Source of the DNA: Macrostomum lignano
Lineage: Eukaryota
Assembly: GCA_002269645.1 (NCBI GenBank)
Contig: NIVC01001449.1
Coordinates: 62,001 to 126,000 of the forward strand
DNA: 64,000 bases
Direction: 5' to 3'
The notes below the pieces were generated by a model. It did no database searches. It had not been told where the DNA came from and saw only the letters and a program-made list of their open reading frames with translations. Both the position numbers and the translations under genes were made by a program. How positions within the stretch are numbered: the first letter of the stretch is position 1; each line of letters begins with the position of its first letter. Of the stretch, positions 1 to 53,685 are shown piece after piece.

Positions 1-2469
1 TGGAGCCTTGCAGCCTAAATAAGGCGTTATGCCGTCAGTGTAAGGGCCTTTTCAAATTACCAATTCCAGAACCAGAATCGGTTCGGAATTCCAAGAAAAA
101 CAGCAGTATAACTATTAAACTCTGTGCCTTAACAACCTAACTTAGCACAATTTTTCACTTTCTTCTTGGCGATTGTCATTCAATAATAAAAACTTTATAG
201 CACGTATCTCCCTCTAGTTATGGAGACAAAAAGTTATACTTCACAAATTGGTTCTGGTTCTGGAACCAGAACAAGCAATATGAAAAGGCCCAATCATTTC
301 CTTTGCGTCCATTATATTATTTAAAACTGATTCGATGCAGCTATCACCACATTTAGCTGAACTTGCTCTCGTGAATATTTTAATGATTGTTTTAAAAATT
401 GATTTGCAGGATCTGAGGACGACCATGCAAAACGAATGATAGCTAATTTATACATATTGTTTAATGTATTGTAGTAGTAGGACGTACATGTAAAACTCAA
501 AGATCGTGTATTTTAGGAGGCCAATTTCCAGGAAACATACACTGGGAGATAGATAAGAAAAATCCTTTTTGAACCACAAAATCCATGATTTAATTTGATC
601 TTAGGGTGGTGATATCGATCCGGTAAAAATCAACATGGCCATCATTACTTAAATTTAACATATGTTACGTACTAAAGTGTAAAATTTACCGATATGGTTG
701 TGAAGTGAAAGTTTTTATTTTTATAGTGTTTACTTTTTTATTTTATAAACCTAAGCCCAAAGTTGTACGTACATGCAGTAGATCATGTACATGTACGATC
801 TCCAGTGAGATTTTGCTTCGTTCCTTCTTATCCAAGGGCCTACTAACTTACACGATTTCCATTGTTTAGTTGTACATACAACTTAGTTGCGCGTAGAGAA
901 GTGCTGCTATTTTCTTGCATAAGCTGCATTTGCATTCGTAGCTAAATTATACACTTTTAATTCGAGCTGTTGCTTAATTTATGGGGTTTGCTACCGCGCA
1001 TCCGCTTTCCTGCCAATGCTGCTCCTGTATCGATCAATTCTACGTTTAACAAACTACTAATAGCCCGTATGAATAAAAAGAGTAATTTCTCAGTTTAATA
1101 CAGGCCCGAGTAAATGCTTGAGTTGGAGCAGTTGCTCGTTTTATTTATATGGCCTAATAAATATGAGCCCAAAACGGCCACCCTCAAAAAGACATATGAC
1201 GTAAGCTGTCATGCTTTTGTGTAGTTACATGATTACAGCAATACGCTGTACATTAAATCGCGTATACTCGTATATTTTCTTTTTGAAATAAAAAAATAAA
1301 GCTGCGTCATCCTGCGCAAATAGCCAACGTAAAATCAAGTTCTAGTACAGGATCGCTAGCTTCTGTCCCGACACACGCCGTGAGTCAAGTCGACAACAGG
1401 GCAGTAGCCGGAACAGCAGCCAACGTGGTGGGTGCACGCTTTACCATTGACAAGGCACGTCCGGCTGCTGCACGAGTTCACTGTCCAGACTGTGCATGGA
1501 GTTAAAAACAGTTGTTAATCGGATTTTACACTTGGTTTCGATACATGTATCCAGCTGGACCGCATACATGTAAGCAGCTAGATTATTAGTACAGCTGATC
1601 GCAAATGATCGCAGACCACACACTCTCTATAGCTTTCGGATCTTTGAATCTAAGGCGACAGTACAACCGCAGCAAAAGAAACAAGCACGTCCGCAGTTGT
1701 GCTCATTCATTTACCCAGCACACCTGACAGAACCCTGAATCTGTATCATCAGTATCTACTCTGTGTATATGAATTGCGGACAACAAGATACAAACCAAGT
1801 TTTCGCACAGTTGGTTTAATAATGGAGTACACATTTTTCACAGAACTCTACATTTTTCGGGTATATTATGAACATGCTTTTAGCAACAGGAACTTTTTAA
1901 CTAACAAATTAATGTTTTAGTTGAAGAAACTCGTTTTAAGGGGACAAAGACATGCAGGACAGGGCCCCTATGTCACATTTCACATGCTTTTCCAAGATTA
2001 AACCAACATTTTGATATTGGCATAAAGAATAACTGATCGCTACTTTGCTTGTAATGAACACTGATGCAGATCACTATACGCGCTACTTACCAGTAAGAAG
2101 TAGACTGAGTAGTACCAGCTGCAGTAGGAAGGTGCAAAGCTTCAGCGGCATAATATCGATTTATTTAGTTTATTCACAGCGGGTCGTCGATGTAACTTTC
2201 AGATGCAGACGCTATTAAGCTATTCTTCCTTTTTAGAGTGAGACGAGGATTTCCCATTTTATCCCACTTTGCCTGTAGCTACGCCTTGTCTCTGTCGCTA
2301 TAGTGCCTTGCTAGCGGAGATTCTCACTAAATAAACTACGATTGCTTATTTAATCAATAAAAAATTGTGCTATTCTAAGCCGGGAATGTGTTGTCTATGG
2401 TAATTTTTGGTGAGATTATTTGACAAAAACTAGGATATTATCACAGAACTTACGGATATTAAATCATTA

Positions 2470-3237
2470 CACACCATTTTACCCTCGATTTTGAACAAGG
2501 AGAACTTCGAAACCGACAAACTCCTCTCCAATATTGACACTCTATGGTCGGGCACTCAAAATCTACAATCAATATTGACAGATCAAGCTTCAATTTTGAC
2601 TAACTCTGGTTCAATTTTGACAATACACGTTTAGTCAACTTCTCCTGGGAGAATTCGGTAACAAAGTAATCAAATGAAAGCCTGAACGGGGCGAAAGTTA
2701 TCTGTGCAAAATCAGCTGATTCTGATCTGACTTTGCTTTTGGGATCTACAAGTATTGATAAAAAAATTTTCTCCATCCTTTTACACACAGAGACTAAAAT
2801 AGCCTGACTGTTCAATATTGATTAGGAGTTGTCAAAAATGGATGGGACTTTTCGGGTACACAAACTATAGAGTGTCAGTTTTGAAGCAACTCTGTCAAAA
2901 TAGAATCGGACTTTGCGGCCCAACCAGTCAGGCTATTTTAGTCTCTGTGTGTAAAAGGATGGAGAAAATTTCAAAGTCAGATCAGAATCAGCTGATTTTG
3001 CACAGATAACTTTCGCCCCGTTCAGGCTTTCATTTGATTACTTTGTTACCGAATTCTCCCAGGAGAAGTTGACTAAACGTGTATTGTCAAAATTGAACCA
3101 GAGTTAGTCAAAATTGAAGCTTGATCTGTCAATATTGATTGTAGATTTTGAGTGCCCGACCATAGAGTGTCAATATTGGAGAGGAGTTTGTCGGTTTCGA
3201 AGTTCTCCTTGTTCAAAATCGAGGGTAAAATGGTGTA
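2470..3237. mobile_element. Foldback/MITE-like palindromic element
   Basis: Arms ~2471-2810 and ~2925-3236 are near-perfect reverse complements (one ~30-bp indel), ~115-bp spacer, TA on both outer flanks. Confidence 0.75.
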
Positions 3238-3284
3238 TAATCTCCTCGAAATCAGGAGCATTACACCTTTTTGTGTTCTATTTC

Positions 3285-3570
3285 GATGAACTGCATTCAA
3301 TTTCGGCAAACTGGCTTTCATTTTCGGTATCAGCTACGGCCGCACATCCAAACTGCATTCGAATTCGACAAACCGAGAACCAATTTCGGCAAACTGCATT
3401 CAATTTCGGCTACTCAAGTTTCTAATTAGACAAACTGATATTTAAATTCGGCAAACTGCGTTCAATTTCGGCATCGTATATTCAATTTCGGCAGCCAACG
3501 CCTCGTGCCACAGACTGTCTATGGAAATAAGCCCAAAACTGATTTTCAATTTCGGCAAACTGCACTCAAT
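3285..3570. repeat. Degenerate ~20-bp minisatellite (caatttcggcaaactgcatt-like)
   Basis: About 10 imperfect copies of aatttcggc/aaactgc. Confidence 0.7.
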
Positions 3571-3819
3571 TTCGACAGCACGAATCTATAAAAGAGAAAA
3601 AATAAAGACAGAAAAGAGGACTTATGAATTAGGACTTAGAGTTTGCACAAGTACTGCATTTGGAGTACAGTTAAAATGTAATCGTCAGCACTCATCAGCA
3701 AGCAATTGCGCGCGAAGGAACAAAGCGCATAGCCAGAAACAATTGCACAATGCACAGTATGTACATAGTATTTCGTGCACAAGTGATACGCATCGAATTA
3801 CACCTTAACTTACTCCAAA

Positions 3820-4791
3820 TGCAGTACTTGTTTCGCTAAGATTCCTTGCTTATGAGCTTGGTGTCAGCTATGGAAGTGCTCATAACATCATGCATGAGCA
3901 ACTGGGCTGCACAAAGACCTGCGCTCGGTGGGTACCCCATCTTCTCACTCCAGAGCAGCAAGCATCTCCAGAGGTGCTCCAGAGGTGCGAATCTGCCGCT
4001 TGTGGCTGCAAATTTTTGAGCCCCACGGCCCACGACGACTGTCGGATGTCATCACAGGAGACGAATGTTGGATTTCCTTCTTTACCATGAAGGATAAGCA
4101 GTCCAACATGGTCTGGCTGGCAGAAGATGAGCCAAGGCCTGAGGTGCTGAAGACTGGATTCCGCAGTCGGAAGCGGATGTTCACCATTTTTTCAACTCTC
4201 AGGGTGTTGCATCGGTGAACATCCTTCCAGCGGGTGCCACAGTGACTGCCAGGTACTACACAGACGCTGTTCTGCCAGGCGTGCTGCAGGAGCGGCAAGA
4301 ACGTGCGCGAACCAGGCATGGACCTCGACTTCTGCTGCACCATGACAATGTGGCACCGCACAGATCGGCCTCAACCATGGCGTACCCAAGGACAACTGAA
4401 GTTACGTTAAATACTACTACTTCCTACTTCAGTTACTACTTCAGTTGTCCTTGGGCGTACCTGGAGCAGCAAGGGGTCCAGCTGCTGCCCCATCCACCCT
4501 ACTCTCCAGACCTAGCACCCTGTGACTTTTGGCTGTTCCCGAGGATCAAATCCGTAATTTCTGGGGGGCCGTTTTTACGCATACAAGACCTTGCCCAAGC
4601 AGTAAATTCAGCTCTATAGGGTATACCAACTTTGGAGTACCATGACTGCTTTCAGACATGGTGCACACGCATGCGACGGTGCATACATGGTGGTGGAAAG
4701 TACTTTGAGGGAATGTGACACTGATTAGACGCCTCGGCTGCTATAACACTGAGTTGTGAGGTCACTTGCAGAACTTTTTGATCACCCCTCG
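3820..4791 (+). mobile_element. 5'-truncated mariner (DD34D) transposon with transposase pseudogene
   Basis: ARWVPHLLT, ITGDECW, HHDNVAPH, HPPYSPDLAPCDFWLF motifs; D-34-D once the 75-bp insert is removed; right TIR ...tttttgatcacccctcg then TA (4792-4793); frameshifts and a stop. Confidence 0.92.
4385..4455. mobile_element. 71-bp micro-MITE inserted in the mariner ORF
   Basis: 18-bp perfect TIR cccaaggacaactgaagt; direct repeat CGTA (or GCGTAC) on both sides; removal restores MAYLEQ. Confidence 0.8.
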
Positions 4792-5104
4792 TAAGTCATC
4801 ACGAGCTGGCGCAGGAATTACAGGAAAAGAAGCTAGGGAGGGGTGCACGAAAATTGGTGGAGGGCCCAAGAAGTGCCTAAATCATGAACTTAGTGAGAAT
4901 CGATCGATATATTCTATATCGTAAATATTCTGCCAAAGATTAGTAGCTAGTTAGTAGGTCATAGCTTTACTCGTAAGATTGAAAATTAAAGTGATTAACT
5001 TACGCGCTCCAGATATAGTAAAAGTCTAAGAAAGCTGGTTTTATGTTTTTAATTTTCCATTTTGCCGAATTTAAATGTGCCGATTAAAATAAATTATAAC
5101 TATC

Positions 5105-5435
5105 AAAATGAAGCCCAACATTTCAGCCTCTCCGGTGTCGAGAATGCGGAGCATTTCATCCGCGAATGCCCCGGCCTTTACTCAGGACAGACTCACCTTC
5201 ACTCAGTACCTCGGCCCAAACCCGGACCTCTCCGACGTTTTTAGGCCTGAGACCCTCTGTCAGCTTGTCCGATACCCAAGGGCTACCGGGCGAGCGACCA
5301 TCCACCTCCTGGACCGCGCTGCGGACACCGGCCTCACCGGATCTCCCTGCGCGACACCGCAGCACCAGCCAGCGAAATGGGCGGCAACGCCTCCTTGCTG
5401 CATCCGCATCCCTGCAACTAAGTCAAGTACATGTA
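5105..5435 (+). mobile_element. 3' fragment of a non-LTR retrotransposon (C-terminal CCHC region)
   Basis: Frameshifted E..EHFIRECP.AF..DR....LG...L..Y.RATGR, like the C-terminus of I/R1/LOA-type ORF2. Confidence 0.45.
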
Positions 5436-6721
5436 AGTCAAGAAGCCTAACATTTCAACGAATATCAAAAATAAAAGACAGAAAATTACTTAACAGTCAA
5501 AAGACCTTGAAACCACTAAAAAACCATATTGTATCTTAAAAATTGCCTGCTTCCATCCCCACAGGGAAAACCGCTAGTGGCCCCAATTTGCAAATTGGAC
5601 GGAAAACTTTCCGATCAAATATAATTTCTAGCTACTAGCTACAGTTGACGTCACGATCTTATGTTTAGGCAGACAATAGTACGTCTTTTTACGCAAGCTT
5701 TCGACTGTTAAATAATGATGGGTTTAATCTTGGATAGCTGTATTTTGTTGAACTTCAATATTTCAACAGTATTGTAAAACAATTACGAGTATATAGAGCA
5801 GAAAAATATAATCAGAGATACGAAATTACTTAAATCACAGTTTTTTTAAAAAATATAACAACCATGTAGGCATTAAAACGTCAGAGTTAAAATTAAAAAT
5901 GTTGGAAATAAAAAAACTGGTGTTATAGCTATTTCAAAATGATGTTTGGGCAAGGCTAGAGATATGAATGTACGCTCGTATACTTAGCAACATCTAAAAG
6001 TCGGCATCACAGAAGATTCCGTCTGTAGTCGCGACTTTTGAGAGTGCAGGTAAAGTCTCTCAATCTTGCGAGTGATGCAACTCAGCTACGCCGAGGCAGA
6101 CTTGAGTTGAGGAATGAAGTAGGCGGGGAGCGGTGTGCGAGGGTTGGACGGATTAAAGCTACTCCAATCAGTTTTCTCGTATCTTTTATTTCAGAATAGT
6201 CCAAGAGAAATTGCTCACTGGCGCATAGAGTGGCGACTTTTCAATGTTGCTGAGTGTATGTGCATTAATAAAACAAAAATAGAAAAATTCGCTGCACGGT
6301 AAAGCTGCACGGATTAAACAATTGAAAATCTATAAAAATACCTAAGTATACTTTCAGGATCAGTAAATCTCAATTTGACACAAAACAAAACGCAGTGTTT
6401 CAGTTAAATCGTTGAGAGAAAATCTATTTTAACAAGTCTCCCGGCTGAATAAAAAGAAAATGTTACGGAAAAGTTAGGAAAAATCTAGGCAAAACAATCC
6501 ATCTCGTGATAAAAAAGTAAGTTGCTGTGGCAATAGTAATAGAAGCCTAAAATTACCTTTTTAAATTTAAACTACGTTTTAGTTTAAAAAACCGCTAAAT
6601 TTTATTGCTGGCACGAACTACTCCATAACTAGTGACAGCAGGGTAGAAACATTTCATAAGCTTTTGGGACTCAACTTCTTTATTATACGAGCGTAGCTAC
6701 ATTTTGCGTACCTAATTTTCT

Positions 6722-6727
6722 TTTATT
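6722..6727 (-). terminator. Candidate polyadenylation signal of the PKD1-like gene
   Basis: First AATAAA (minus strand) about 270 nt after the stop codon; no transcript evidence. Confidence 0.3.
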
Positions 6728-6996
6728 AGTTTTAAACAACAATTATCTTGAGTAAATCCATATGTAAGCTCGTATGTGAAAGTGATGCTTTACAAATTAA
6801 TCGCGTAAAAAGTTCATTCAAGCTCGATCACATGCTGATATGCAGAAATGGGTGAGATGATTTCCCATTCGAAAAAAATCCTTAGTAATCACTGCTATAC
6901 TATATAAGCCTATCAATTAAGTGTCTAAAATAGACTTTTCAGTTGAAAAATTACCGAATTAAAAAGAGTCATTAGCCTAAAGGGCTTCAAAAGTTA

Positions 6997-7199
6997 TTAT
7001 TTCTGCTTCGAGTCGAACTCTTCTCCTTCGCCGGAGGTGACATCTTCTGGCGCAGACTTTTGCACTAAGCGGTACATTATCGACTCGAAGGTGTCAATGG
7101 AATCTACGTGAGTCCGGTTGCGAATGCTGGTTAGTTTCAGCTCCACATCGTTGAGGCTTGTGAGCCAGTCTGAAGTGTCAGCGTTGGATTTGCGAATTA
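6997..7199 (-). CDS. PKD1-like last exon, cytoplasmic C-tail
   Basis: Acceptor ...aaacag| at 7200, phase 1; encodes VIRKSNADTSDWLTSLNDVELKL...EEFDSKQK, stop TAA 6999-6997. Confidence 0.7.
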
Positions 7200-10100
7200 C
7201 TGTTTCAGTTTACCTATTAATAATTTAATAAGGCTTTAAGGTGGCGGGGAGTGTTGGCAGGGGAGACAGTGGCGAGGCAGTGATATTCCAGCACCAAAAT
7301 TTCCCACCCGAGCGCAGGAGCCGCCCAAAAATGGATGTGGATCATGGTAAAAGCAACGTCCTGCTTACCTTCTTCCGGGCTTTCAATGTACACTGGATCG
7401 GGGCGGCCACGAGCAATTTTCTTTAAGCTATTCAGTATGTAATCGATTATCTTGAAGTTCTCCTCTTCTGGCGCATCCTCCATTTCCTGACGAACCTCTT
7501 CGTAGCTGTCATTGAGAATAGCCACAAACATGTTGAGCACAATGTACATGATAAAGCTGATGTAGGCCAGGAATATTAGTTTAGCTTTCAGGCCGTTTCG
7601 ACTGATCACAGCCACATCGAATTTTCCAAGCATGACTGAGAACTGGGTGGACATGGCCTGCAGTACTGAGTAGTACTGCGCCTCGTGCCTTCCCAGGTAC
7701 AGATAGTGCAGCAGGGTGAAGGCTATGAATGCAATGCTGAACACCCAGAAGAAGGACTTCAGCTGATCTAGCGAACGCGTCAAAGTGCCCAATAAGTGAC
7801 TCAGATTTCGGCTAAAACGAATCATGCTCAAAAATGACAACTGAACAAGGAATGTTGCGATACCCAGAAGGTAACAAAATGTCTCGTTCAGATACATGAC
7901 GTAGCGAAGATTTGTGCTCAAGCCGCTCTTCGAGTTCTGCATAGCCTCCAGGGCGGTGACAGTCGCCATGGAGCGCATGACGTAAAAGGCGGCGGCGCAG
8001 ATGAGGCACACAAACGCGGTCAGGTTGAATATGTTCCAAACGCTTTTGAAGTAGGCGCAACGCTCACGGGACAAGTCATAGTAGGCCTTTACTAGGAGGC
8101 ATAGGGTCAGCAGTCCAGTCAGGATTTCTGATATCAGCGCGAAAAGTCCCATTACACCGACGTATCTGAAATGGATCGAATTAAGTTGTCTTGTTAGCTC
8201 CTACTACATTTTTTTATGTTGAAGATGTTTAAGTTAAAGATACAATACAACTACTATTCCTTAAATAAATTCTAATTTGAAAGTATGATGCGCAAAATGA
8301 CTTTCTTATTTACTATTCATTTCAAGAATAAGAGTATCAGCCCAACCCTTACCTGTACAACCGAGTAGTGTAAACCTGGGTTGCAGTCACCGCCCCACCA
8401 AACGGATAAAATTCAGTAGCAAACAAAACTGAACTGAACAGGTTGACATTGGGATAGAACAGATCCACCTCGACGAACACGGCTCTGGTGTAGTTGTCAA
8501 GCCAGTTAGCCTCCTTGAGCTGATGCAGCAAGCTCTGAGCCGCAGCTGCATCATTAGGCAGTACAACAGTGTAGCCTCCACCAGCATAGATGCCCTGCTG
8601 TCCCCAGTAAGGCAGGCTGTTCGTCACCCGGGCTTCCAGACCGGAGAAGGCGAGATCAAATGCCGAGATCCCGTCGCTGAAGTTGCAAGATCGCTGAGCC
8701 CTCCAGCCAGGTTCGAAGCAGCTACGCTGGTCCCGTCCGAAACTGTACGCTGCTGATCCGCCAAGGTTGTCTCTGCTCACTGGCGCTATGCGTAGCTGCC
8801 TAAGCGTGGCGTGACCCAAGCGAAAGCCTGTAAAGTCCGCTATATACTTGCGCTCCCATGCGCTCATGCTTAAACCGTTGAGTCGATCCAGTGGGTAAAG
8901 CCCAGGTAGAAGAGTTTTCTCTGCGTACACAAAGTAGTCGCCTCGAGTCTGTACGTTTGCTAGCCCTGTTGCCGATACGTCCGGGTCACTCTGATCGAAT
9001 AGATGAGCCTTTATGCTGGCGTGCAGGCCGTAGGTGAAGGGCTCAAGATTGCCATAGCAGATGCAATAGAGCAGTGCCAGCAGGAGACAGCTACCGATTA
9101 TTTCTACTGCTGTTTTCTTTGCCTTGCGTCTCAGCTCGCTGCTCTTCTCAATCTCCTCTACTTCGTGCAGATATCGAAAGCCCTCTGCGATAATCAATTT
9201 TTATGTTGAGTTAAAATAAATTGTTGATCACAGCTAAGGATGTCTTTTTAATGGACAATAGTAGAAAAGGTATGTTTAAATTATGAATTAAAAAAATTAA
9301 AGTGCAGAAGCTCACCCGCATGCGTTGCAGGATCTCTGAATCGAACTCGAACAAAGTCCATGTCTTTAGCGTCGTAATCTTTTCTTAGCAACACAGAGAC
9401 GAATAATCCAATGGCCAAAACCTTTAATTAGGTTTGCATTCATGACAAGATTTATCCGTGCAATAATCAATGTGGGAGACGTCAGCAAGCGTCTTCGACG
9501 TCTTGTGGCGTCGATAGAAAATACATTACGCTGTTTTTTATTGTCTCTTTATTAAATATCGGACTCACATGCCTGTATCAATCTACAAAGCAATTTTATC
9601 GAAATAGAGGGGAAGGCCATCTGCTTTTTGACAGCTGTCTGTTCTTTTTTCTGATGTGGCAGTGGGGAGGCTAAAACAAATAATGTGCGTAATCGGTAAA
9701 ACCCTTCTATATGTTTGCATCCGTCAGCGTATTGTAAAATTACCGATTCACGATGGGCGTCGATCTATTTTGGGTGCGTCTGTAGCGTCTACGGACGTCA
9801 TAATTTTTCACCGGTTAATTACGAGTACATGTACTTTGGCCTGTAGCTACTGTTAAAATTTATTACAGTAAATACACTATGAAACTTAAGCTTGTTTATA
9901 AGAATTTTAAAATTGACATACCTTCAGTGGCTGAATCAACAGTAGAGACTCGAACAAGGATAAGAAGAAAGTTAGGAGCCACTCCTCGGACTTTGCCTTT
10001 CCCCAGTCCATGGCGTAGAATACGATAAAAATACCAGAACCGACCATGCTGCCTAGTACTAAAGCCCAGCCAATGTACTGGAACCAGTGCGGTAGGCGGA

Positions 10101-13100: not shown

Positions 13101-16100
13101 GCGAGCCCAACGATATTTGATCCACACGCATGACGGCAGACCTGACAAGCTCATTGGTCTGTTCAAGAGAATCTGTTGAGTTTACCTTGAACTTTGCCAA
13201 GTGATTGATGAACGTGGTGCGTTGCTACAATATAAAATCAAAGCTCTCTTACACATAGCTGTTAGTTTCAGAACCCATAGGAACCAAATGCGACATACCT
13301 GCTCCATTTGACGGCGATATGCTTCTCTCATCTCGTCAGTAGCATTGGCACCTTCTGCTTCGTCATTAGGGGCATTCATTAGCGACCCCACACAGATCAT
13401 AGTAGTGGCAGCGCTCTGCTGATCGCCGCTTTCAAAATACTGCTTCAACTCTTGATTTTCTCCGGACAATATGCTTGAGATATTGGCTAGCAGGACGTCA
13501 GCTGGGACAGGGGGAGGTCGTACCTAAAGTTGCATGCAAATAAATACAAGGTTAAGTATATCAAATATAACAAAAAAGCGCAGCCATTTAGTAAGTGGTA
13601 AACTACAATATTTAGCTTTTTATGATGAGGCGAGATAACAGGCGAATACCATAACATATTTTATTTTTTAAGCATTACAGACTACATATTGTTAACTTCT
13701 CCAGCCAAAGTATACATATCAACTCAGTTCTTTTAAAAACATAGGTAGCTGCAGTGTAATGAATTACGTCTGTCTTGATGAATTCCTGCTAAGCTATATA
13801 TTTCTACTTGCCAATAAAGTCGTACTCGAACATAATGACTGGATAAAATTACTTTGGTTTCCCACATATCGTTTTAGATAAATTAATATTGGCTGTGAAC
13901 AACAACGAAATTAATTTTAGGCAATCTTGATATGGCTAGCTCCATCACTATAAAAATTGTCTAAAAATGTCAAATTGCAAAAAGAACAAATATCTCACAA
14001 AAACGTCAAAGTAGAAGTCCTTGCGGTAATCCAGAGGATCGTAGATCGAAGCAATCAGCGTGGCAGCATACTCATCGGTAAACGAGCCCACAGGGAAGAA
14101 AACACCAGGAGGCGTTTCAACTTCGCCATTGAAAAATAGAATGGACCTGCGACTGCCTTTTGGCTGAAATCTGTACTCGTAGTTAAGACTACCGGTGGTG
14201 ACGTCAAACTCTCGCCATCCGTAGCAGCTTATTTTAAACTTTGTTACCATAGCAATGCCTCGCAGTGGAAATACGGTGCAGTTACCGCCAAGTGGAGGAC
14301 TGTTTACGGTAATGTTGGAGTACAAAATAACCGGTCCCTCCTGGTTCTCATTCCAAACTTTCACAGACACCTCATAGTAAGTTCCATCGGGCAATGTAGA
14401 CTCCAAACGAATCAGATGATCGCGGGTGTAGTTACCTAAGTATTAAATATTGCACATAGCTTATTTAACTATGTAACTGAAAAGCATGCACATAGAGCTG
14501 AATGTTTTATGCTTATCACAGATGCATTAAACAACATTGAAACACACCGTCCTGCACGACCCCAGAAAGATCGTCATCGGATGCAGATCCGTAGCGTTTC
14601 ATTCGCCAAAAGTACTGTAGCGGCTGGAACTTTTGTCCGCATTGGTTGTTGCTACACTCTGCTAGAAGGTGAAGCTCTTTCTGAGAGGATATCTTCAGGT
14701 TGCAGTTTCTAAGACATCTAGAAATTATTCATTAATGGGCGCTTATTTAACAAATAACTACTACTGAACCTATTCAAAGTACATAAAAACGAAATAAAAC
14801 TTACACCAAACGTATTTGAGGTCGCTTTTGAATCTTTACTGTGACAACTTTTTCAACAAATTTCCACCTCGTGTCCTTATAGATTATAAGCCTAAACAGA
14901 TAAGTACTATTAGCCAAGAAATTGTAGCTAGTTCCATTGTAAACACCAGCTACTGAGCTATCGCCTTGCAAAATCACTCCGGGACCGTTACCATAGCAAC
15001 CTTTAAAATTTTTCACACCCTGGACCTCGGGCAACTCGATAAAATTCGTCATATTAAATGGCAGCGAAGAATTTTCTGTAAGCTGCATGCACATCCAAAC
15101 AAATTTCATGTCAGTATAGTTTCCGTCCTCAACATCGTAGTCACGGATGGATGGGACAAGGCTGAAAGTCTCATTGTACTCCAGAGTGTCCGGACCAATT
15201 ATTTCATTGAACTCAAGTGGCGTTTTGATTATGTCCAGAAAAAAGTTCAGCTCAGTAGACACAGGTGGAATCACATTCAGCATAGATAGATTCATTACAA
15301 CCTTGTACAATCCGTACCACAGAGTTCTGGGCTCGAGCGAGAGCGTGAATGAATCAGGGAGAGTGGTTAAGGCGTCGCTTCCACTAGGATAATTAAAAAT
15401 TTGCCAGCGTCGATAGGTCTTGCGCGTCTTTGTACAGTTGAGCTCTGTCTCGGCCTCAACGGTGATTCCGACTGACCGTCTGAATATTAAACGATTATCC
15501 GGGTCGCGAGGAATCAGGTAGCTGTCGTTAAAAGTAAAGTTTAGTGACGGCTCATAGCATAGCCAGTCCCACACAATGGCAATGTTTTCTACAGTTTCGT
15601 TGCTGACATGGTTGAATGCAAATACACAGGCAGAGTAGCTTCCAAACCATGGATACAGGTGGAAGATCTGGAGATGTGAGTCTGTGTAGGTGATTTCTGT
15701 AAAGTTTATTCCGTGCTCGGTGGCATACGGCTGACACAGGGAAGGCAATCCATAAGACACGTTCGGAGAGCCGTCTCCAAAACTGATTACAAAACAGCCG
15801 TTTGTTCCGAATCGAGTAATATTTAGCATAAATGTCGTTGCGTTGTAGTTTAGCACAGGCCCGTCGTTGTAGAATGCGCCAACGATGACTGCGTCCAGAA
15901 CTATATCTACTGGAGTGTCTATTATCTGGCCTTGGAGCATGTTTGAGCAGTTTACTGTGAAATTGCGAAGGCCCACAGCACTGCGCTCGAATGCATGCTC
16001 ACTGAATACGTCGGAGCTAGGACCAAGAACATCCAGATAATGATAAATCCCACCGAAGCCTTTGAAGTCAATGAAGCAGTGAACATTCGTGACTGGATAG

Positions 16101-40100: not shown

Positions 40101-43100
40101 TGGTTAGGAGCGGCTTATGGTCCGTCACAAGCACGAAATGATGTCCAAACAGGTACTGGTGGAACCTTTTTACTCCGAATACTATGGCCAGCGCTTCCTT
40201 CTCCAACTGCGAGTAGTTAATCTCCGGCTTTGATAGCGTCCTCGAAGCATAGGCAACTGGCCTTTCATCACCATTCGGCATCACGTGCGAGATGACACAT
40301 CCGATTCCATACTTTGAAGCATCCGTTTGTAGAACGAGCTGCTTCTTCGGATCGAAATGCGCTAGCACTCGGTCAGATGTCAGCGTTTTCTTCACTCTGT
40401 CAAATGCAGCGTTGCACTCCTCACTCCAGTGAAACTCCGATTCCTTGCACAACAGTCGATTGAGCGGTACCAGAATCGACGACAGATTCGGGATGAACTT
40501 CGCGTAGTAGGTTATCATTCCAATTAGAGAGCGAACTTCGGTTGCATTTGTTGGTGCCGGTGCATTGTGAATTGCCTCAACTTTCTCGTTTGATGGGTGA
40601 AGTCCATTTTCGTCAATAACGTATCCGAGGAATGCAATCTTGTTGAGACGAATTTCACACTTCTTTCTGTTTAAATGCACGCCATAATCTGAAAGGTGCT
40701 CCAACACAGCGTTCAACCTATTATCGTGGTCTTCCAGACTGGTTCCAGACACCAGAATATCATCTATGTATACAACGACGTCCAGGCCCTGCAGTATTTT
40801 CTCCATGGCCTCCTGAAACTGAGCCGGTGCGGATGCCAGTCCCATTGTGAGTCGGTTATAATGAAACAGACCGAGATGAGTGTTGATAGTGGTGAACCTT
40901 CTACAGGATTCTTCCAACTCAAGCTGCAGGAATGCTTGCGAGATGTCCAGTTTGGTAAAATATTTCCCGCCATTTAATGTTGCAAAAATTTCTTCTGGTC
41001 GTGGCAGAGGATACTTGTCGACCTCTAATTGTGGATTGACTGTCCTTTTAAAGTCAGCGCAAATTATCACTGATTTTCCATCGCGCTTGAGAACAGGAAC
41101 GATTGGCAATGCGAAATCCGATGCCTTCACCTTCGTGATGATTCCTTGGGCTTGCAAACTCTTTGAGCTCGTCCTCAATGAGACCCTTGATTGCAAATGG
41201 AACTGGCCGACTTTTGAAATACTTTGGTATTGAATTCTCCTTCAGCACTATATTGGCCTTCAATCCTTTAATGGTTCCCAATGTCTCAGCAAACACTTGC
41301 TCATGCCTCCTTACCAATAGATCCAATAGGCTGGACTAATGTGGTCACGTTCACACTCGCAAACTTGTCCCAGTCAATCTTGATCTTAGAAAGCCAGTCG
41401 CGTCCAAGCAGATTTACTCGTTCTCCTTTGACAATCAGTACAGGCAATTGGTAACGCCGGACGTTGTGGCTAACCACGTCGATTGTTGCTTCACCTAATA
41501 CTGGGATTGAGTGATCCGTGTAGCTGGACAACCTTACGGTAGTCCTTGAAAGCTTCAGGCCTAGTTGCTTGCTGGTGTCGTTGATCAGGGTTTTATCCGC
41601 ACCAGTATCCACTTGAAATCTTACAGCTTTTCCGTTCAGTTCCAGTTCGCACTCGTATGGTGGAGAAGTGACATGCGCGACCTGTCCAGTCGAGCACACT
41701 GTCCTGACTTCAAAGCACTCCCTGTGGTGTCCCTGACTCGTACAGTTTGAGTCCCTGCTGTGTGAGCTGGTTGAACTAGCTTGTCCTGTGCATAGTGCAC
41801 TCTGCCGTGTCTCTTATGTCTGGACGAGCTGAGTTTCTTTTGCTTTCCACCTCCGGAATCTTTAGTCCTGTCCTTTGTGCGGCAGGCATCACTTTTATGT
41901 CCCACTCGACCGCACTTGCTGCACGTCTTGCTACGGTAGGGGCAGTTCTTTGCCCAGTGATCTTGTGCATTGCAGCGGAAGCATCCAGATTGATTGTTTC
42001 TGTTGTTCTTCTCTGACAAGCCGTCTGTCAGATTTTTACTGGCTCTCGAAGACTTCACCGCCTGGATTGCACCGGTTGACGAAATTGTCACCACACCTCT
42101 TTCCGCTGCTTCCATCGCAGTCGCAAGGGTAAGTGCTCCAGTTAGTGTCAGTGTGTCTTCTTGCAACAGACGCTGCTGTGTCAGGCGATTCCTTAGGCCG
42201 ACAACGAACCTGTCTCTCAGTGCCTCGTCCAAGAATTCATTAAAACCACACGTGGCAGCCAACTTCCGCAGACTTGCGATGAAATCGCTCACATTTTCTC
42301 CTTCATGTTGGGCTCTGCTGTGGAAGTTGAATCTCTCGACAACGATCTTAGGCCTTGGGTTAAAATGCTCCCTCAGGGCCTTGACTTGATCGTCGAAGTT
42401 CACATCCTTGGGCTTCTTTGGTGACAGCAGGTTGCGGAGCAATTGATAGCAGTCATTACCAATCACTGTAATCAGATTTGCTCGCTTATGTGCCTCCTCG
42501 GTCACTTTGTTTACGACGAAAAACTGCTCGAGTCGTTCTTCATAAGCTTCCCATTGCTCCGGTTTAGCCACGTCGAACTCTCCGATTTTTACACTCCTCG
42601 CCATTGTTATGTCCTCTTCTTCTGCTTCTATACCGACTATTGCCTCCAGGCTACCATCTGACATCAAAGTCAAGTCGAAGAAGCATTATTTAAAATACGA
42701 GCTGTTCACAAGCTTTATTTGCCTCTAGCTAGCGCACGTCTTGCTTGCCTTTTTGTAATACTGTTAGCCTTCGGCTCTTAAAGAAATAAAAGATTGTACC
42801 CTAGACTATAGACAAAAGAAGGGAAGCATTAGTGCATTTGCTAAACCAAAAGTCCATACGAGCGTACACAACAAAATTGAAGCGTCCGCACCATTGCCGG
42901 AGGCATGTCTCTTGCAACGACTAGTTCTATTAAGAAGATGCAACGTTTATATTATTACTGAGAGATAGTGTCTTCAAGTTTATTGCCGCTGAAAAAATAC
43001 ATTGAATTATTCCGATTACATGTACGTTTAGCAACCAATGGTTTTTGATCGCAGACGAACTTTTAATACCTACCGATATACTCGTATGCCCCTGGTATAC

Positions 43101-46100
43101 TTTCTGCAAAAATTTACCTCTATATTGAGGTAAGGGAGCACGCTTTAGAAGGCAAAGAAATATAAAAGAGAAAATCAACATAGATTATATTCTTTCGACG
43201 CGTTTCGGTCCAACTAGAGCCATCTTCAGGTCTGGTGTATTTTTAGTCACACAACAACTTTTATAAGAGATAAGTGAACAAATGTTTACTGTACAGTCCG
43301 TAAATTCTTCCGTAAATTCTTTAACACGCCTATTAAGATAGTTTTCCACACTGCTAAGGTCGGCCAATACGTTAGTAGACTGAAATCCCATGTTCCTCTT
43401 GCTCTGGCAACAGGTGTTTGTGTATAAGTTCTCTTGTTCTGTTGACCAGAACATTACCTATATAGGTAAAACTAAAAGGCACTTGTACACCAGAGTCAGA
43501 GAGCATTGGTTGAAAAGGTCGGCTATCCAAGACCACCTGCTCTGTTGCAACAGTTGCTGCGAAATTGAGCAAACTCAGCAGTTCAAATTTATTGATCGGT
43601 GTAGGACTGACTTTAGGCTTAATATACTTGAATCCATGTACATTAAAAACCAAAAACCAAATCTGAATATTCAGCTCTCCCATAGTGGTGCGGGCCATTT
43701 GCTCAAGGTGTTCCAAGTGAAGGCACAAACCTGAACAATGTACTCGTAATCTCTGCTCAACTTTGAAAATTCTGCCCATGATATGCCCCTTGGACTGTAC
43801 AGTAAACATTTGTTCGCTTATCTCTTAAAAAAGTTGTTGTGTGACTAAAAATACACCAGACCTGAAGATGGCCCTAGTTGGACCGAAACGCGTCGAAAGA
43901 ATATAATCTATGTTGATTTTCACTTTTATATTTCTTTACCTCTATATTATCCCTTTAGCGACACCCTGCTGGAGATAGGATGATTAGGAAAACCTGTAAT
44001 TTTACTTGCTTACTGATAACACAAATGAACCAGTAAAGTTGAGTACTCGCAATACACTTCGACCAAAAGTGTCACAAAGTAGCTGACTGGATTAAAAGAA
44101 GCCGACTAATAAAAATCAACAATAGCCTCAGTAACCCCGAAATTCATACCCTCTTTGATGATGCAACCGCGGAACTGAAACTGGCTCGCCGCTGCAGACC
44201 CGTTGAGCAGCAGGACTCGCAGCTCATTCGAACGAATCAAATGCGGCAAAGGCTGGTCGGCGCCATTCTTTGAATCAAAAATCTAAAATTTCATATATTT
44301 TGTGAACTAAATCTGGCGTCAAGCCAAGTTAGCTCATATTAGACCTAGGAACCATGGCAGTTGATGCGCGAAATCAGTTACCGTGTCGGTGCCAAACACT
44401 GTAAAGTTGACAAACGTCCAGTTTTGCAGTGTCTTAAACTGCAACAAAAACTTCACTCCATCGCTGACAGACAATGCAAGACCCGTGATGTGGTAGAATT
44501 CCGTGAACTCAAAACTTATCACAGTTGGTGAGATGCTGCTGGCCGTCATTTCACTAGTCGGGATTAGCTCGCAGTCTAAAATTTGAATTAAAAAATCTTT
44601 GCTGCTAACTAAAGTCACAGAACTTTTTGTGTGCGTCTGAATAACACAGCAAATTCTTACCGTCGGGGTAGCCGAGTAGCTCCAGTTTCATCACCCGATT
44701 CCCGATAAAGTTAGTGTCTGGCGGCGTGAACTGAACAATCTTGGCTTTGATTGGCACTGGCAGGTCCATTCGAATCGGCGTGTTGTCATTGGCGAAGTCG
44801 TTGAATTTGTGCTACAAAAAAGTGGAGTTCTCTTAATTAGTTTTCTTGTTTTCTATAGAAGATAGTAACTATAATGGTCGATTAACCTCAATAAAATCTG
44901 CCTTCAACTTACAACATTTAATGTATTCGACATCTGATATGATGTCACAGGTATCAAGGCTCTGTGGTGATCACCGTATGACAGAGTAAAAGACCTCACG
45001 TAAGCGAACCAAGCTCGTGTCAAATCCATTGTGGACGAGCCCTGCACGACAACGCCTAAGATCGTGTGCCTCGTTATCAAGTAAATATTTACGGAGAAAA
45101 CTGGAAATTGAAAAGATTTAACGGGGCTGCGTGAACGCGCTTATATTGTTGTTACACATTGACTACTCTTAATGCAAAATAGTAGCTACTCACCGTGGGT
45201 AAAAAACATGCCGGGAGGCTGCAGTGGCTTCTGCGGAGAGTTCAGTCGCAGCATGTAGGGCGAAGGATGCGTGGTTGGCTGTATAGAGTAGCCACTGAAG
45301 TTATGGAACTGAACGTCAAGCTGATTGACTCCGATTATTCCCTCCTCGATGCCAACAGGATTTCCAATCAAGTGTTTCGGGCCTGTGGGATTTTTAAAAC
45401 ATGGCTTGAACAGGGGCAGCTTTAACAAGGTCGCATCCAGTGGCACTCCTAATAAAAGTACGCGTTAGTTTATATAGAAACATGATCTCCTTCATTTCTT
45501 CGTTATCAAAATGAAATTCGACCTGCAGCCAGTGAAGGGGCCAATAGTTATGTACGTTTAGTTGAATTTAAGCACATGCATCGGATATATAAGTACGTTT
45601 CGTTTCTATTTTGACCATTATATGCAGAAATGATGATTCATTATGATAGAAAAAGTGAAATGCGACGCCTATTTTTCCATGCAGCCACAATTTGACAGGG
45701 TAGCATAAACTGTCTGTCTGCTGAAGTGAAATATTTTATAATGTTAGTGTCCTTGGTCTTCTGGACTCTCACTACTGCTGCGGCTCTACAATAATTTCTA
45801 TTATTAATGTGAGAGCCAAATAACTGGGGCGGCGGATTCGACTAAACTTTTCCTGATGATGCAATCAGGAAATATTAACTCACAGACCGTTTAATTAAAT
45901 GTTCACAATATCAGAATGTTGTCTTACAAAGAAAAACAATATGAAAGGATGTTCCAAATAAGAAGCTCGACTAGCTCAAGTTGTAAGGAGGGGATTAGTT
46001 ATCCTTTAATTTTAGTTTGATTAGATTCGTGTATTCTCTGTTGAAGTCAAAAGCAAAGCAAGGGCATAGGAGGAGCAAGGAGAAGAGCAAGGAAACGGGC

Positions 46101-49100: not shown

Positions 49101-52100
49101 ATATCGCAGGCGCGGTCGTCCGAAGAATGATGAAAGCAGTTGAATGTGCTCCGTGCAGGTCAGCTCTGATCGCAAGCTCTGAGACGCCAGGAGCTTCACG
49201 CGGACCATGCTCACTCGTTGCCATAAAAATGTTTTGAACAAGGAAGGAACTGGCGGCCTGATTTTTCCTAGCAGCAATGTCCTGCGGGTGCTGCTCAATG
49301 CAGAGACTGTTGTTCAGCGTGCCAGCTACAGCAGCGGATTCTCTAGTGATGTAGCTGTTCAGGAGATTCTGCGCATGTCAATCGATCTGTTCCCTGAACT
49401 GGACTCTCATTCGGCATCCGCGAGTATCAGCATTGAGTCTCACAAGCTGCATTTGATTCGAGTAATGGCTATGCTTTTTATAAATATTCGAATGAAGAAG
49501 CTGGCTAAGGATCTTTCACGCGCTAGAAGAAAACCCGGCAAGAGGCAAAGGCTGCTTCGAACATCGATTTTTCTTAATTTGTAATCAGCGTATCCGAATA
49601 TGGAAGCTGGTAAGTTATGGCTTCAATGGATTCTGTTTAAGCTTATTCCCGTGATAAACTATATATTTGCCATTAAATGCGTGCAAAAAAATTCTAGATA
49701 AATTAAAAATGAATCTGTAGTTGTTGATTTGTTAATCCTATTTCTTACTGAGTCTGAATTTTCACTAGTTACGAACATAAAAAAAAAGAGACCCCGACAA
49801 GCTGAGTTGGCTGAGGGTAAGAAGAAAGGCCCGGGCACAATTATCGATCGTGGGGGAGTGGGCACTGGGGTGCCACTTTTCCTACTAGGAAAAAGGCACA
49901 ACTTTTTTTACCCTCATGCGCAGTCTAGTTATATTTCTTGGTCTGTGGCAGGCACACACTCACACAGGAGTGTACAGCGGCCCTAACTTTATTTATCGTT
50001 AGGCATGTACACTTCACTGCGCCTTGGGGGGTTGGCCCTCAAGGCCGTTAATTGCACGAGCAGAGCCAAGCCGAGATTCCAATTCAGCCCCAAATTAATG
50101 TGACTGCACTTGGAATCGAGCCTGGGTCGCTGGCACACCAGAGCAGCTGCGCTACCGCTGGGCTACGGCCCCCCTTAAACTTTATGGAAAATTTCAGGGC
50201 CAAATTTATCACTTCAGTAGTAATGACTAGCCATTTAGCCCCCCGCTGGGGGGCTTTAAAATGACACCTAGTGGTTTTTATTTTGGCCCAACAGTAACCA
50301 TTAATTTTCATTTCCATTAATAAAAAGTTACTTTTTCTCATTTTGAAAAAAAATAAAATTGCTTTCAAGCACAAACTCTTAGTGCATATCGTCATTGGCC
50401 TGGGCATATTCTGGTCCGCAGCAGGAGCTCAATATGCCAATCCCTGACGGCCTCTTTATTAGCCTAACTCAAAGAATCAAATCTTTAATAAATACGCTGG
50501 TATTTCCTATCAGCAGAATTCAGCGTCACTTGTGTGTACTATTTTATTATCTGAATTAAATGAACTACTTGAGCCGTACTACTTGACGATCTGACAATCG
50601 CTCAACAACCTAACCCCCCCCCCAACAATTCAGCCATCTCCCATAAGCCTTGATATCTCAACAATTCAGCCATCCCCATGAGCCTTGACATCTCAGCAAT
50701 TCCCCCAGTAAGCCTTGACATCTCAGCAATTCCCCCAGTAAGCCTTGACATCTCAGCAATTCCCCCAGTAAGCCTTGACATCTCAGCAATTCCCCCAGTA
50801 AGCCTTGACATCTCAGCAATTACCCCAGTACTGGTAAGCCTTGATATCTGAGCAATTCCCATGAGCCTTGAAATCTCAGAAATTACCCCAAAAAGCCATG
50901 ACATCTCAGCAATTCAACCAATAAGCCTTGAAATCTCAGCAATTCCTGAGATGTCTCCACAACAACCTGAAATTATCCCTTCCAATCCCAAAAAACAGGC
51001 TTCAGTCATACTCTAGCGGCCTAGAATTGTCCCCACAGCAAACAATAATTTACTCAGTAGTCCACACTTACTACCTCAGCAGTTTGCAGCTATACACTCA
51101 TAAGTCTGGAGCAAAAATCATATCATTGCTTCTGAATATGGTCTGGAGAAACTCCGTCTGCACATCTCACATCTTTACATCTATGTTATGATCCTCCAGA
51201 CAATATGATCTATATGAACTACCTTAGCAGTTTTCAGTTTGTCCCCTCAGCAGTCTGCAGTTCTCCTCTCGGCCCACTCCTCAGAATCCTCAGCAAACTG
51301 AAATAAAGGATCCTTTTAAGAATCAGAATTTTTCTCATCATTTATTATGGTTCACTAAATCAATTTTCGATACATATCGGCAGTTTTTTCACAATTCAGC
51401 CTTCATTTTAACTATAAATTTAGCAGCATAGCACTTTGATACTTTCATGGATCTAGGCAATACCCATTGATGCGATGAGTAATACTCACGCCGCCACTGA
51501 GCATTATTTTCCTCTCCCTTGCTGCATCCAGTACTGAGGCCTACTACTCACAATGAAGAGAGAAAAGTTGTGGCGCAATCTTAATTGGAATTGCTATTCA
51601 GTTAGTCAAGATTTTGACCTTTTCTAGCCTCCCATTGAAAGCATTGGGAAAACTCGTTTTTCGAATATTTAACCATCTTCCCATTCGAATTTTTCAATGC
51701 AATTAGATCCGCACAATCTCACAAAAATTTGCAATTGAATAAAGCAAGTTTGAAAAAAATCGGTTCAGGCATTCAGGCTGTAGACTGAAATACCGGTCAA
51801 ACCTGAGAGATTTAGTATATTGGTGATGATGATGAATGTTGACTCTACACCGAGCCTGGTTTATGGGTTACCAAACTAATAAATTACTCACTAGCAGCAG
51901 GAAAGCCGAACACTTCGAACTCGGGCAGGTAGATGGGGCGCCGATAGTAGGTCAGCTTCCTGATTCCAGCGTACCGAGCAACCTGAATTTCAACAAAGCT
52001 AGCTTTATTTTCATTTCAATTTTGCTATGACTTTTACTCAAACTAGCCTGAACGATTTAACGGCGGCCTAGAAAAATCACTCGGATGTCTAAACTGATGC

Positions 52101-53685
52101 ACAATAACTTCTAAAACGAATCATAAGTATTCATACCTGATTGATAGATGGTACCATCCAGTATCGCTCCTTTGGGGGACCAACGGTATGTCTGCTGACC
52201 ACCTTTACTGCAGGACTCTCGACGGCAGAGCTATTCGAAATGAATATTTCTGAGTGATCCAAATATTCGTAATCTGAAATCAATAGTATTTTAGTTAGTT
52301 GTTGTTATCTTTAAGTATCCAAAAATGCATTCTACATCTTGAAAGTTTTTTGACAAAACACAGCAGAACAATTAGGGCAGTAAGAAACCATTTATGATTA
52401 AATCACCGGAAGCCGATACAATGAAGATACGAGCGTAATTTGTTCTACGGAGCATGGATGAAGGAATATATTATTCTGCTCATATGCGGACTACTCGTAT
52501 AAGTCGTAGAAACAACCAATGACGAGCAGAGCCATGCCTAGTCAAGTTGCCAATATTTTAACAAGCGTTAGGAAATATGGACAAAGCTATTGCTACACAA
52601 CAATTAAAACCGTGAGTACCTGCATTCGTTCAGTTTTCTACCACTAGGGTTGATGCAGATAAAGATTTATAAGACTTGAAAACCAGTTAATCCATGTATA
52701 ATAGAAGCACAGGGTTTAGGGTTTACAGTCAATTTGTGGCAGGCAAATTGCAGTAGTCAGTTGCAGACGCCACGGTTTGGAACACCCCAAGTTTAGATGA
52801 ACCTATGACCACGGATAAACAATTCTTATATTCCAGCACCCTCGCCACCCAGCTGTGTGTTTCTGATTGCTCTGATTGATTGTCTGTACAAACCGTAGTG
52901 CATTGACTGCCTGTTGCAGGGCAGCACCTCACAGGCCTGAAACGGCACAGTCGGGTCCATTGTGTAGCAGTAGTAAAAATCTTTGCTCTCGCAATTGCGA
53001 CAATAGTTTCTAGAGCGGTTCTTGGCGCCATCTCCTGGAAAGTTTGCATCAAGCTGGCACTGGTAGGGTATGGTGTGCGGTCCGGAGCTGCTCCAGTTCT
53101 GGCAGGCCAGGCCTCCTACGGTTACATTCTGCAAGCCATAGTAGTTCTTGTAGGACACAGTGCCGCATACGTCATGGCCGTAACCAGCTAAAATTCATCA
53201 AGGATAAGTTTTATGTACATTTGGAATGGCGCTGCTCAATTTTGGGGCACTAAATTGACTACTTATTCAAATTTTAAATTCCATAATAGCAAATTAAACC
53301 TTTGCTTGTTCCATATGAGTACTATGTTGAGCGAAGTATGTGAAGGTAAAATGTAAAAATGCTATGCCAGACATGTAAGCGGAAAAATGAAAGTACTCTC
53401 CGAGGCATTTTTAATCAATTATTATAAAAATATTGTAACAGGAATCTATGATTCGAATTTGATTCGATATGATTCGATTTGATTCGATATGATTCGATTT
53501 GATTCGATATGATTCGATTTGATTCGATATGATTCGATTTGATTACGAATAATAAGCCATAAAGCAATTTACAGAAGCAAAAAACCTACAATAAATTTGG
53601 TTTTTAAATCACTTTGCCAGGATACCTTTACACTCTTAAATTGTAAAAACCCACGTGCTGATAGGGCCCTTTTGTACACACACGT

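Follow-up and report, generated by a model that had tools for sequence, protein, structure and literature searches.

What produced the many short words, each made of the tetramer CGAG between two TA dinucleotides, that are scattered through a 64-kb stretch of the Macrostomum lignano genome (assembly GCA_002269645.1, contig NIVC01001449.1, positions 62,001-126,000, forward strand)? The original prediction for this stretch, which is referred to here as the window, was that TA-CGAG-TA and a longer form, TA-CGAGCG-TA, are the excision scars of a mariner transposon that makes a staggered cut of 4 nucleotides (nt). The analysis described here indicates that the words are probably the excision footprints of a cut-and-paste Tc1/mariner element with the ends TA/CGAG...CTCG/TA.

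Abundance of the TA-bounded words

The 8-mer TACGAGTA, or its reverse complement TACTCGTA, is found at 21 sites in the window. Shuffling that preserved dinucleotides gave an expectation of 1.12, with 5 as the largest value in any shuffle, and Markov backgrounds of orders 1-4, built with the scar sites themselves included, gave 1.07-2.95 (Poisson P from 3e-20 to 9e-12). The 10-mer TACGAGCGTA, or TACGCTCGTA on the opposite strand, occurs at 6 sites against an expectation of about 0.07-0.08 (Poisson P from 5e-11 to 2e-9 over the same orders). These figures correspond to an over-representation of about 15-fold for the 8-mer and about 80-fold for the 10-mer. The excess that had originally been set against rough base composition thus holds within the window against Markov backgrounds of all four orders. 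All 19 of the 8-mer sites listed in the original prediction were recovered, although two had been missed (14174 and 53905), and its six 10-mer sites are exactly the six found here. The resulting density, 27 sites per 64 kb or about one per 2.4 kb, agrees with the predicted one per 2.5 kb.

When all 8-mers were ranked against an order-3 background, TACGAGTA came second to the palindrome TACATGTA (13 observed, 1.0 expected), and both words have the form TA-N4-TA. No other context of the 362 CGAG tetramers is nearly as common as TA-CGAG-TA, and more than half of the TACGAG hexamers (27 of 49) are directly closed by TA or CGTA. A TA stands on both sides at all 27 sites, as in the footprint of an element that duplicates a TA target. 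The 40-nt flanks are mutually unrelated at every one of the 27 sites, and the 8-mer occurs in both orientations (10 plus, 11 minus), which argues that the words are dispersed and not copies of a single repeat.

Insertion into plain TA sites

The most direct comparison comes from a gypsy-type retrotransposon with long terminal repeats (LTRs) at 38343-42873. Its two LTRs are 97.2% identical (171 matches, 5 mismatches; 2.8% divergence) and, besides a 15-bp slippage indel, differ by one event: TA in one is TA-CGAGCG-TA in the other. A duplicated TA and six further bases account for it exactly, and because the same 10-mer is present at five unrelated loci, it is read as an insertion in the second LTR and not as a deletion in the first.

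A sister word provides a similar case. In a 30-bp tandem array at 50.6-51.0 kb, the sequence is CCCCAG-TA-AGCC in four units and CCCCAG-TACTGGTA-AGCC in one. The polarity of this case is clear, an insertion into plain TA, with the caveat that the insertion creates the palindrome CCAGTACTGG. TACCAGTA and its complement TACTGGTA are mildly enriched in the window (7 against 2.4 expected, at 50829-50836, 2088, 17418, 24903, 32507, 53741 and 55856), and the 3-nt counterpart TACCATA is not (5 against 5.7). A CCAG-ended mariner of the Mos1 type would leave TACCAGTA as its 4-nt (or 3+1) scar.

We regard it as very probable that the words are excision scars of some kind.

Junction forms

If the words are junctions left by an element, other combinations of its terminal bases can be counted in the same way. 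The comparison covered all words made of TA, i bases of CGAGGGG (left end), j bases of CCCCTCG (right end) and TA. The form with 4 nt in total, TACGAGTA, was observed 21 times against 1.6 expected, and the 4+2 form, TACGAGCGTA, 6 times against 0.07. The 3-nt footprint TACGATA was seen 4 times against 6.3, the product of CG microhomology, TACGTA, 10 times against 10.5, and the 3+3 (TACGATCGTA), 2+2 (TACGCGTA) and 4+4 (TACGAGCTCGTA) forms not at all. The filled cells are therefore the 4-nt and 4+2 forms only, and the forms that go with a 2-nt or 3-nt stagger lie at background.

Both four-base ends are retained, with filler between them, at two sites (23373 and 23898). Two further sites (9820..9833 and 37972..37987) are compound, with adjoining words, which implies that the TAs of scars are themselves used again as targets.

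Variant 10-mers at 6765, 38149 and 50493 (TACGAGCTTA twice, TACCAGCGTA once) are not what simple trimming of 4-nt overhangs would give. The base 3' of TACGAGTA is G at 9 of the 21 sites, and GCT follows at four (23382, 29546, 33670, 53905). By contrast, C in the mirror-image position ahead of the word is found just three times (P ~0.08, with small numbers). Such asymmetric G/C neighbours are unexpected under a symmetric heteroduplex model.

The mariner of the window and its relatives

The window contains a single copy of a DD34D mariner, 5'-truncated and frame-shifted, that had been described as ending in ...CTCG/TA. This is borne out: the right terminal repeat (4769-4791) ends in ...GATCACCCCTCG (...CCCCTCG), reads ...CAGAACTTTTTGATCACCCCTCG and is followed by TA at 4792-4793. 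The scar bases are thus equal to the terminus of this mariner at its right end, the only end present. The translated fragment has HHDN...(34)...D spacing and matches the Pfam family Transposase_1; its best protein matches (71% identity) are metagenome proteins.

At 4386-4460 a foldback of 69 bp (arms CCAAGGACAACTGAAGT...) interrupts the reading frame of the fragment, with the 6-bp duplication GCGTAC on either side. When the foldback is removed, the frame M-A-Y-L-E-Q-Q is restored.

More complete relatives are found elsewhere. The exact 20-nt mariner terminus is present in more than 120 metagenome contigs (521 kb), with a TA next to 115 of the 125 termini. These contigs include about 46 copies of about 550 bp that resemble MITEs (miniature transposable elements with inverted repeats) and seven copies of 1.26-1.34 kb, with CGAG...CTCG at both ends. 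The relatives thus have the size (~1.3 kb), terminal inverted repeats (TIRs) and TA target of a mariner, features that in the window copy can be checked at the right end only. One copy, L028, has an intact frame of 353 amino acids that aligns over its full length to the Mos1 transposase (3HOS, E 8.5e-39) and is 72% identical to the window fragment. More relatives begin TA/CGAGG; they are on long contigs of ENA and on TARA scaffolds. The contigs fetched through five database matches share only the mariner with the window (~77% identity). Neither they nor the metagenome contigs have anything else in common with it, and all are taken to come from different hosts. The exact 20-nt terminus also occurs in two contigs submitted as bacterial metagenome-assembled genomes (L121, JBLIRM010000020.1; L122, JBMYQZ010000693.1), where it is probably eukaryotic contamination of the bins.

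The original prediction linked the scars to the mariner of the window. Its terminus does match, as do both ends of its relatives, but the copy itself is truncated and frame-shifted while the scars are undecayed, which makes an origin from this copy doubtful; the source would have to lie elsewhere. That source would be an active relative of the window mariner, or its MITEs, at another place in the genome. That the scars come from this mariner lineage is the reading toward which the evidence leans.

Excision model and points against it

In the proposed mechanism, the element would insert at a TA, duplicate it and later excise. End-joining would then seal the break, leaving two TAs with bases from the tips of the element between them. 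Two products are envisaged: one with four bases, TA-CGAG-TA (equal to TA-CTCG-TA on the other strand), and a minor one with one overhang whole and two bases of the other, TA-CGAG-CG-TA.

The Mos1 transposase places its nick in the non-transferred strand three bases within the repeat, and it cuts the transferred strand at the junction (PMC4344528). Sleeping Beauty and mariner elements leave 3-nt 3' overhangs on the flanks, and their end-joining footprints equal these overhangs (PMC7827188); in plants, the footprints of mariner-like elements reach 4 nt (PMC9632168). By the rule that the footprint equals the overhang, a four-base footprint implies a four-base overhang, and the first-strand nick would then lie 4 nt inside the element, compared with 3 nt in Mos1.

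The 5'-CGAG-3' of the left flank would lie fully over the 3'-GAGC-5' of the right flank, with two outer C:G pairs and a tandem G.A/A.G mismatch within. Tandem G.A mismatches are expected to be stable. Each 3' end would be base-paired and lie directly against the 5' end of a flanking TA, which would allow ligation without synthesis, and replication would resolve the mismatch bubble into TACGAGTA or its reverse complement from either strand. The overlaps of the original prediction do not amount to Watson-Crick microhomology: full overlap yields only the two C:G pairs around the tandem mismatch, and the 2-nt AG/GA overlap invoked for the 10-mer consists purely of A.G and G.A oppositions, with no Watson-Crick pairing.

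The 4-nt staggered cut is the simplest reading, and it is supported in so far as the junction forms of a 2-nt or 3-nt stagger lie at background, but the 8-mer is ambiguous, the argument is based on length, and host repair may shape the scars. A true 4-nt nick, as opposed to an effect of repair, falls a little short of being probable when judged from scar length. The complete proposal, in which excision of the DD34D mariner in this host yields CGAG overhangs of 4 nt that self-anneal and are ligated unprocessed, leaving the same 8-bp scar at each hop, is tentative and rather doubtful.

Several observations weigh against this model. The pairing depends on non-canonical G.A mismatches. The 8-mer fits 3+1 (CGA+G) as well as 4+0, because base 4 of the terminus (G) is the complement of base 1 (C), and the need for four bases from a single end is confined to the six 10-mers; for CCAG ends the ambiguity is the same. 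The 4+4 junction, as mentioned, has no occurrence in the window. Within the 64 kb, the TIR census detected neither an intact element with CGAG ends nor such a MITE, and the sole mariner copy is broken and old, in contrast to the young scars. The footprints of mariners vary with host repair, and non-canonical forms are documented (PMC3770610).

Other points concern the insertions themselves. The polarity of the indel in the LTR pair rests on structure, with two copies and no outgroup. A paralogue search around all sites (blastn, word size 9, in the window and the fetched contigs) covered only the LTR and tandem-array cases and no 8-mer site. The claim that the words replace a plain TA consequently rests on the 10-mer at 42857 and on the sister word in the array. 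The 8-mer at 14174, the sole one in a verified exon, is not insertion-like against the REJ profile: with its 6 nt deleted, the score falls to 76.1 bits from 78.6, a drop that lies among those given by the control deletions. As 1-2 chance matches are expected, this site may be one of them.

The relatives' genomes add a further difficulty. In 461 kb of control contigs with the elements masked, TACGAGTA occurs 10 times against 7.9 expected and the 10-mer not at all, and long contigs with mariner relatives have 0-2 sites per 20 kb where the density of the window would give 6-7.

Scar-like words in other genomes

The lack of CGAG scars in other genomes rich in CGAG-ended mariners implies that the scars are specific to this genome or its repair system. 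To judge by these contigs, CGAG scars appear not to be a general property of the mariner lineage. The control set does have palindromic TA-N4-TA words of its own, namely TAGGCCTA (50 against 3.2 expected), TACATGTA (39 against 11.9) and TACCGGTA (13 against 2.8). Scar-like words in general are thus not unique to the window, while the CGAG ones are.

TAGGCCTA (L001-L120) always has distinct flanks; seven copies lie in the 4.8-kb contig L062 (569-3431), and a (TACGA)n tail is interrupted by one of the copies. The word has the look of the control genome's own scar word, although no source element for it was found in the control contigs. Empty alleles of MITE insertions were not found among the control contigs either, every orthologous pair being filled.

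The control contigs also have an excess of TACGATA (81 against 40). This was considered as a sign of 3-nt scars and rejected, as most of it lies in (TACGA)n runs at a retroposon-like end. The runs are of variable length and adjoin a conserved GAAGAGTTTAACGTGGACTC (L026 1068-1095, L080 338-360) and resemble a retroposon family's microsatellite tail; in k-mer counts they imitate 3-nt mariner scars.

Alternative origins

A canonical 3-nt cut followed by host repair could yield the same 8-mer. The CGA-3' overhangs would overlap at two positions (G.A/A.G), and fill-in of one base would give TA-CGA-G-TA, just as the same rule would give TA-CCA-G-TA for CCAG-ended mariners; the non-palindromic TACCAGTA obeys it. 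Arithmetically, the 8-mer is the same as 3+1 or 4+0, host repair is known to vary footprints (PMC3770610), and the lineage is without such scars in other hosts. A 3-nt cut cannot, however, generate TA-CGAG-CG-TA, and its 3+3 product, TACGATCGTA, is absent. It would also need extension from mismatched 3' termini, and it gives no reason for the lack of plain TACGATA, which is below its expected count. This origin is unlikely, if still one to be reckoned with. It is considerably more improbable that the match with the mariner is coincidental and that the words come from another TA-targeting element, such as one with asymmetric CG...AG ends and a 2-nt stagger, for which 2+2 would be TA-CG-AG-TA. 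The census of TIRs in the window turned up no CG...AG-ended element, the 10-mer would be left unexplained, a mariner with a perfect CTCG/TA end is present, and the both-ends sites hold CGAG and CTCG together. What speaks for such an element is that TACATGTA, as TA-CA-TG-TA, is most simply a 2+2 footprint, that the scar-like words of the control genome are palindromic 2+2 types, and that the window has no active CGAG element.

Finally, the words might not be transposase products at all, but functional or compositional motifs, or the remains of MITEs lost by spontaneous microhomology-mediated deletion between their terminal repeats. Enrichment that survives Markov backgrounds up to order 4, the two orientations with unrelated flanks, and the word inserted into a plain TA of an LTR all speak against this. 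A deletion that runs from the fourth base (G) of the left end to the terminal G of the right one would likewise yield TACGAGTA, but a microhomology of 1 nt would not be expected to yield one dominant product, and the stronger CG or TA repeats would lead to TACGTA or TA, of which TACGTA shows no enrichment (10 against 10.5). Apart from this, the site at 14174 is in a conserved exon and matches the protein profile without change, in agreement with a non-transposase origin, which we consider highly improbable overall.

Distribution and age of the sites

One-mismatch neighbours of the 8-mer are at background (40 against 37.7 expected), from which it follows that the scars have hardly decayed and are young. 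As a rough bound, they are under ~6% divergence, which fits the presence of a 10-mer in a retrotransposon with an LTR divergence of 2.8%. Counting all scar-type words, about 45 of the 3,921 TAs in the window, or ~1%, are affected.

Compared with random TA positions, the 27 sites (Table 1) are moderately clustered (P ~0.01-0.03). Either local hopping or avoidance of exons could give such clustering. One of the 27 lies in exonic open frame, which makes up ~14% of the window. The original prediction had placed a single site in a PKD exon; no listed site could be matched to that description, and the only site in a Pfam-supported exon of the polycystin/REJ gene is the unlisted one at 14174.

Table 1. 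Scar words and related features of the window, in window coordinates.
Feature	Position	Strand	Basis or remark
DD34D mariner copy, 5'-truncated, frame-shifted	3836..4793	+	translation, terminus
8-mer TA-CGAG-TA	1265..1272	-	word count, flank comparison
8-mer TA-CGAG-TA	4968..4975	-	175 bp from mariner right end; word count, flanks
8-mer TA-CGAG-TA	5784..5791	+	word count
Compound TA-CGAG-TA-CATG-TA, two words with a common TA	9820..9833	+	intron of polycystin gene
8-mer, REJ-domain coding exon, read Y-E-Y, possibly chance	14174..14181	-	count, REJ profile
Both-ends form TA-CGAG-CTA-CTCG-TA, holds 8-mer 23380	23373..23387	+	
Both ends with filler, TA-CGAG-(13 nt)-CTCG-TA, holds 8-mer 23915	23898..23922	+	
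8-mer	23993..24000	+	word count
8-mer	24068..24075	-	word count
8-mer in open frame without Pfam match	26760..26767	+	word count, Pfam
8-mer	27480..27487	+	word count
8-mer, 40 bp past 27480 site	27520..27527	+	word count
8-mer	28111..28118	-	word count
8-mer	29546..29553	+	word count
8-mer within TIR element 30545-32682	32058..32065	-	word count, TIR census
8-mer	33670..33677	+	word count
Compound gA-CGAGCG-TA-CGAG-TA (one-mismatch 10-mer fused to 8-mer)	37972..37987	-	
8-mer	43079..43086	-	word count
8-mer within TIR element 43150-43941	43741..43748	-	word count
8-mer, 55 bp from 10-mer 52428	52492..52499	-	word count
8-mer, absent from original list	53905..53912	+	word count
10-mer TA-CGAG-CG-TA	5971..5980	-	word count
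10-mer	6686..6695	+	word count
10-mer	26506..26515	+	word count
10-mer	34671..34680	+	word count
10-mer in LTR_b; sister LTR plain TA at 38525-38526	42857..42866	+	LTR alignment
10-mer	52428..52437	+	word count
LTR_a, unscarred, GTCCA-TA-CACAACA	38343..38533	-	LTR alignment
LTR_b, scarred, GTCCA-TACGAGCGTA-CACAACA	42690..42873	-	LTR alignment
TA-CTGG-TA (TACCAGTA word) in one tandem unit, four sisters plain TA	50829..50836	-	

Other TA-bounded words

The palindrome TACATGTA occurs with unique flanks at 485, 788, 1542, 1565, 5428, 9826, 20800, 24615, 26913, 27304, 43017, 56520 and 59736. Half of its half-sites (13 of 26) extend to G-TACATGTA-C, a GTAC extension that points to a preferred target or to another origin. 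TACCCTA or TAGGGTA is found 14 times against 2.9 expected (e.g., at 29529, 33684, 46599 and 55353). Four of these sites lie in repeat pairs (the terminal repeats at 30552/32669 and the two LTRs); those outside repeat pairs could be the 3-nt scar of a CCC...GGG-ended element.

Other features of the window

The window has a GC content of ~44% and a CpG observed/expected ratio of 0.89, that is, no depletion. A polycystin-1/REJ-like gene runs on the minus strand from ~20 kb down to 7.2 kb, with fibrinogen-C, PKD, REJ, polycystin-domain and channel exons. The best protein match of the channel exon is 34% identical, to a cestode protein, and a database search with the large PKD open frame gave no relative at E<1e-20.

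A P-element-like transposon at 46477-49933 has TIRs (TAACTAGACTGCGCATC) that match at 16 of 18 positions and an open THAP9-like frame of 860 amino acids with THAP, P-element helix-turn-helix, RNase H-like and GTP-binding insertion domains. As this frame is uninterrupted, the transposon may be active. Further elements with inverted repeats are present, including those at 30545-32682 and 43150-43941. Reversed sequence was tried as a control for the TIR census and discarded as invalid, as inverted repeats survive reversal.

An 87-bp stretch adjoining LTR_b (42604-42690) recurs with 97% identity 7.4 kb away at 35180-35266, just left of a nested inverted-repeat block (35270-38236). This could be a second, disrupted gypsy copy or a tandem arrangement.

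Significance and comparison with known systems

Work on excision footprints usually relies on reporter assays and deals with a few of them at a time, while here they are the strongest k-mer signal of the window. Raw genome sequence would thus let excision and double-strand-break repair in vivo be read genome-wide in a non-model animal. Searches of open-access papers turned up no genome-wide description of such scars, and those on the words themselves gave only primers. If the 4-nt overhang reading is true, the genome would hold a ledger of tens to hundreds of thousands of excisions, dense, young and uniform, with +6 and +8 bp indels as a measurable class of mutation. A true 4-nt geometry would also make this the first animal mariner off the structurally based 3-nt rule of Mos1 and would point to the residues that set the nick position. 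If, instead, host end-joining adds the base, the scars would report a lineage-specific repair preference. Either way, they would amount to +6/+8 bp indels at ~1% of TAs, to new TA targets that are used again, and to markers for dating transposon activity.

Among known systems, the footprints of Tc1 and Tc3 (TA-CA-TG-TA) have exactly the form of the co-enriched palindrome TACATGTA. The CGAG words, in contrast, are non-palindromic, and a symmetric terminus joined as 2+2 would give TACGCGTA, which was not seen. Sleeping Beauty, with its TAC(A/T)GTA footprint, shares the logic proposed here: identical overhangs overlap fully, with outer pairs and a central mismatch, to give one word and its reverse complement. 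It is, however, a DD34E, Tc1-like element with 3-nt overhangs and one central mismatch, where four bases and a tandem G.A would be involved here.

Plant Osmar5-type elements belong to the DD39D class. In the window, the spacing is DD34D, and the exons are of animal type (polycystin/REJ and fibrinogen-domain). Osmar5, Ppmar2 and Stowaway MITEs resemble the present case in leaving up to four terminal bases between TAs, with historical scars seen in gene alignments (PMC1925063, PMC9632168), but plant footprints spread over 1-4 nt, whereas one 4-nt product dominates in the window.

There is also a likeness with Mos1, Himar1 and Hsmar1, which share the TA-bounded scars, the retained terminal bases and the seal by end-joining, the element here likewise being DD34D. 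In these animal mariners the nick lies 3 nt within the element and the footprints are 3 nt long (PMC4344528, PMC7827188, PMC9632168), unlike the 4 or 4+2 bases found here. Judged through scars only, the Mos1-type footprint is not seen in the window, with TACGATA at 4 against 6.3 and TACGATCGTA at 0, compared with 21 and 6 for the CGAG words. The M. lignano scars thus depart from the norm of animal mariners in the length of the footprint, in its uniformity, with two products, and in its density of about one per 2.4 kb.

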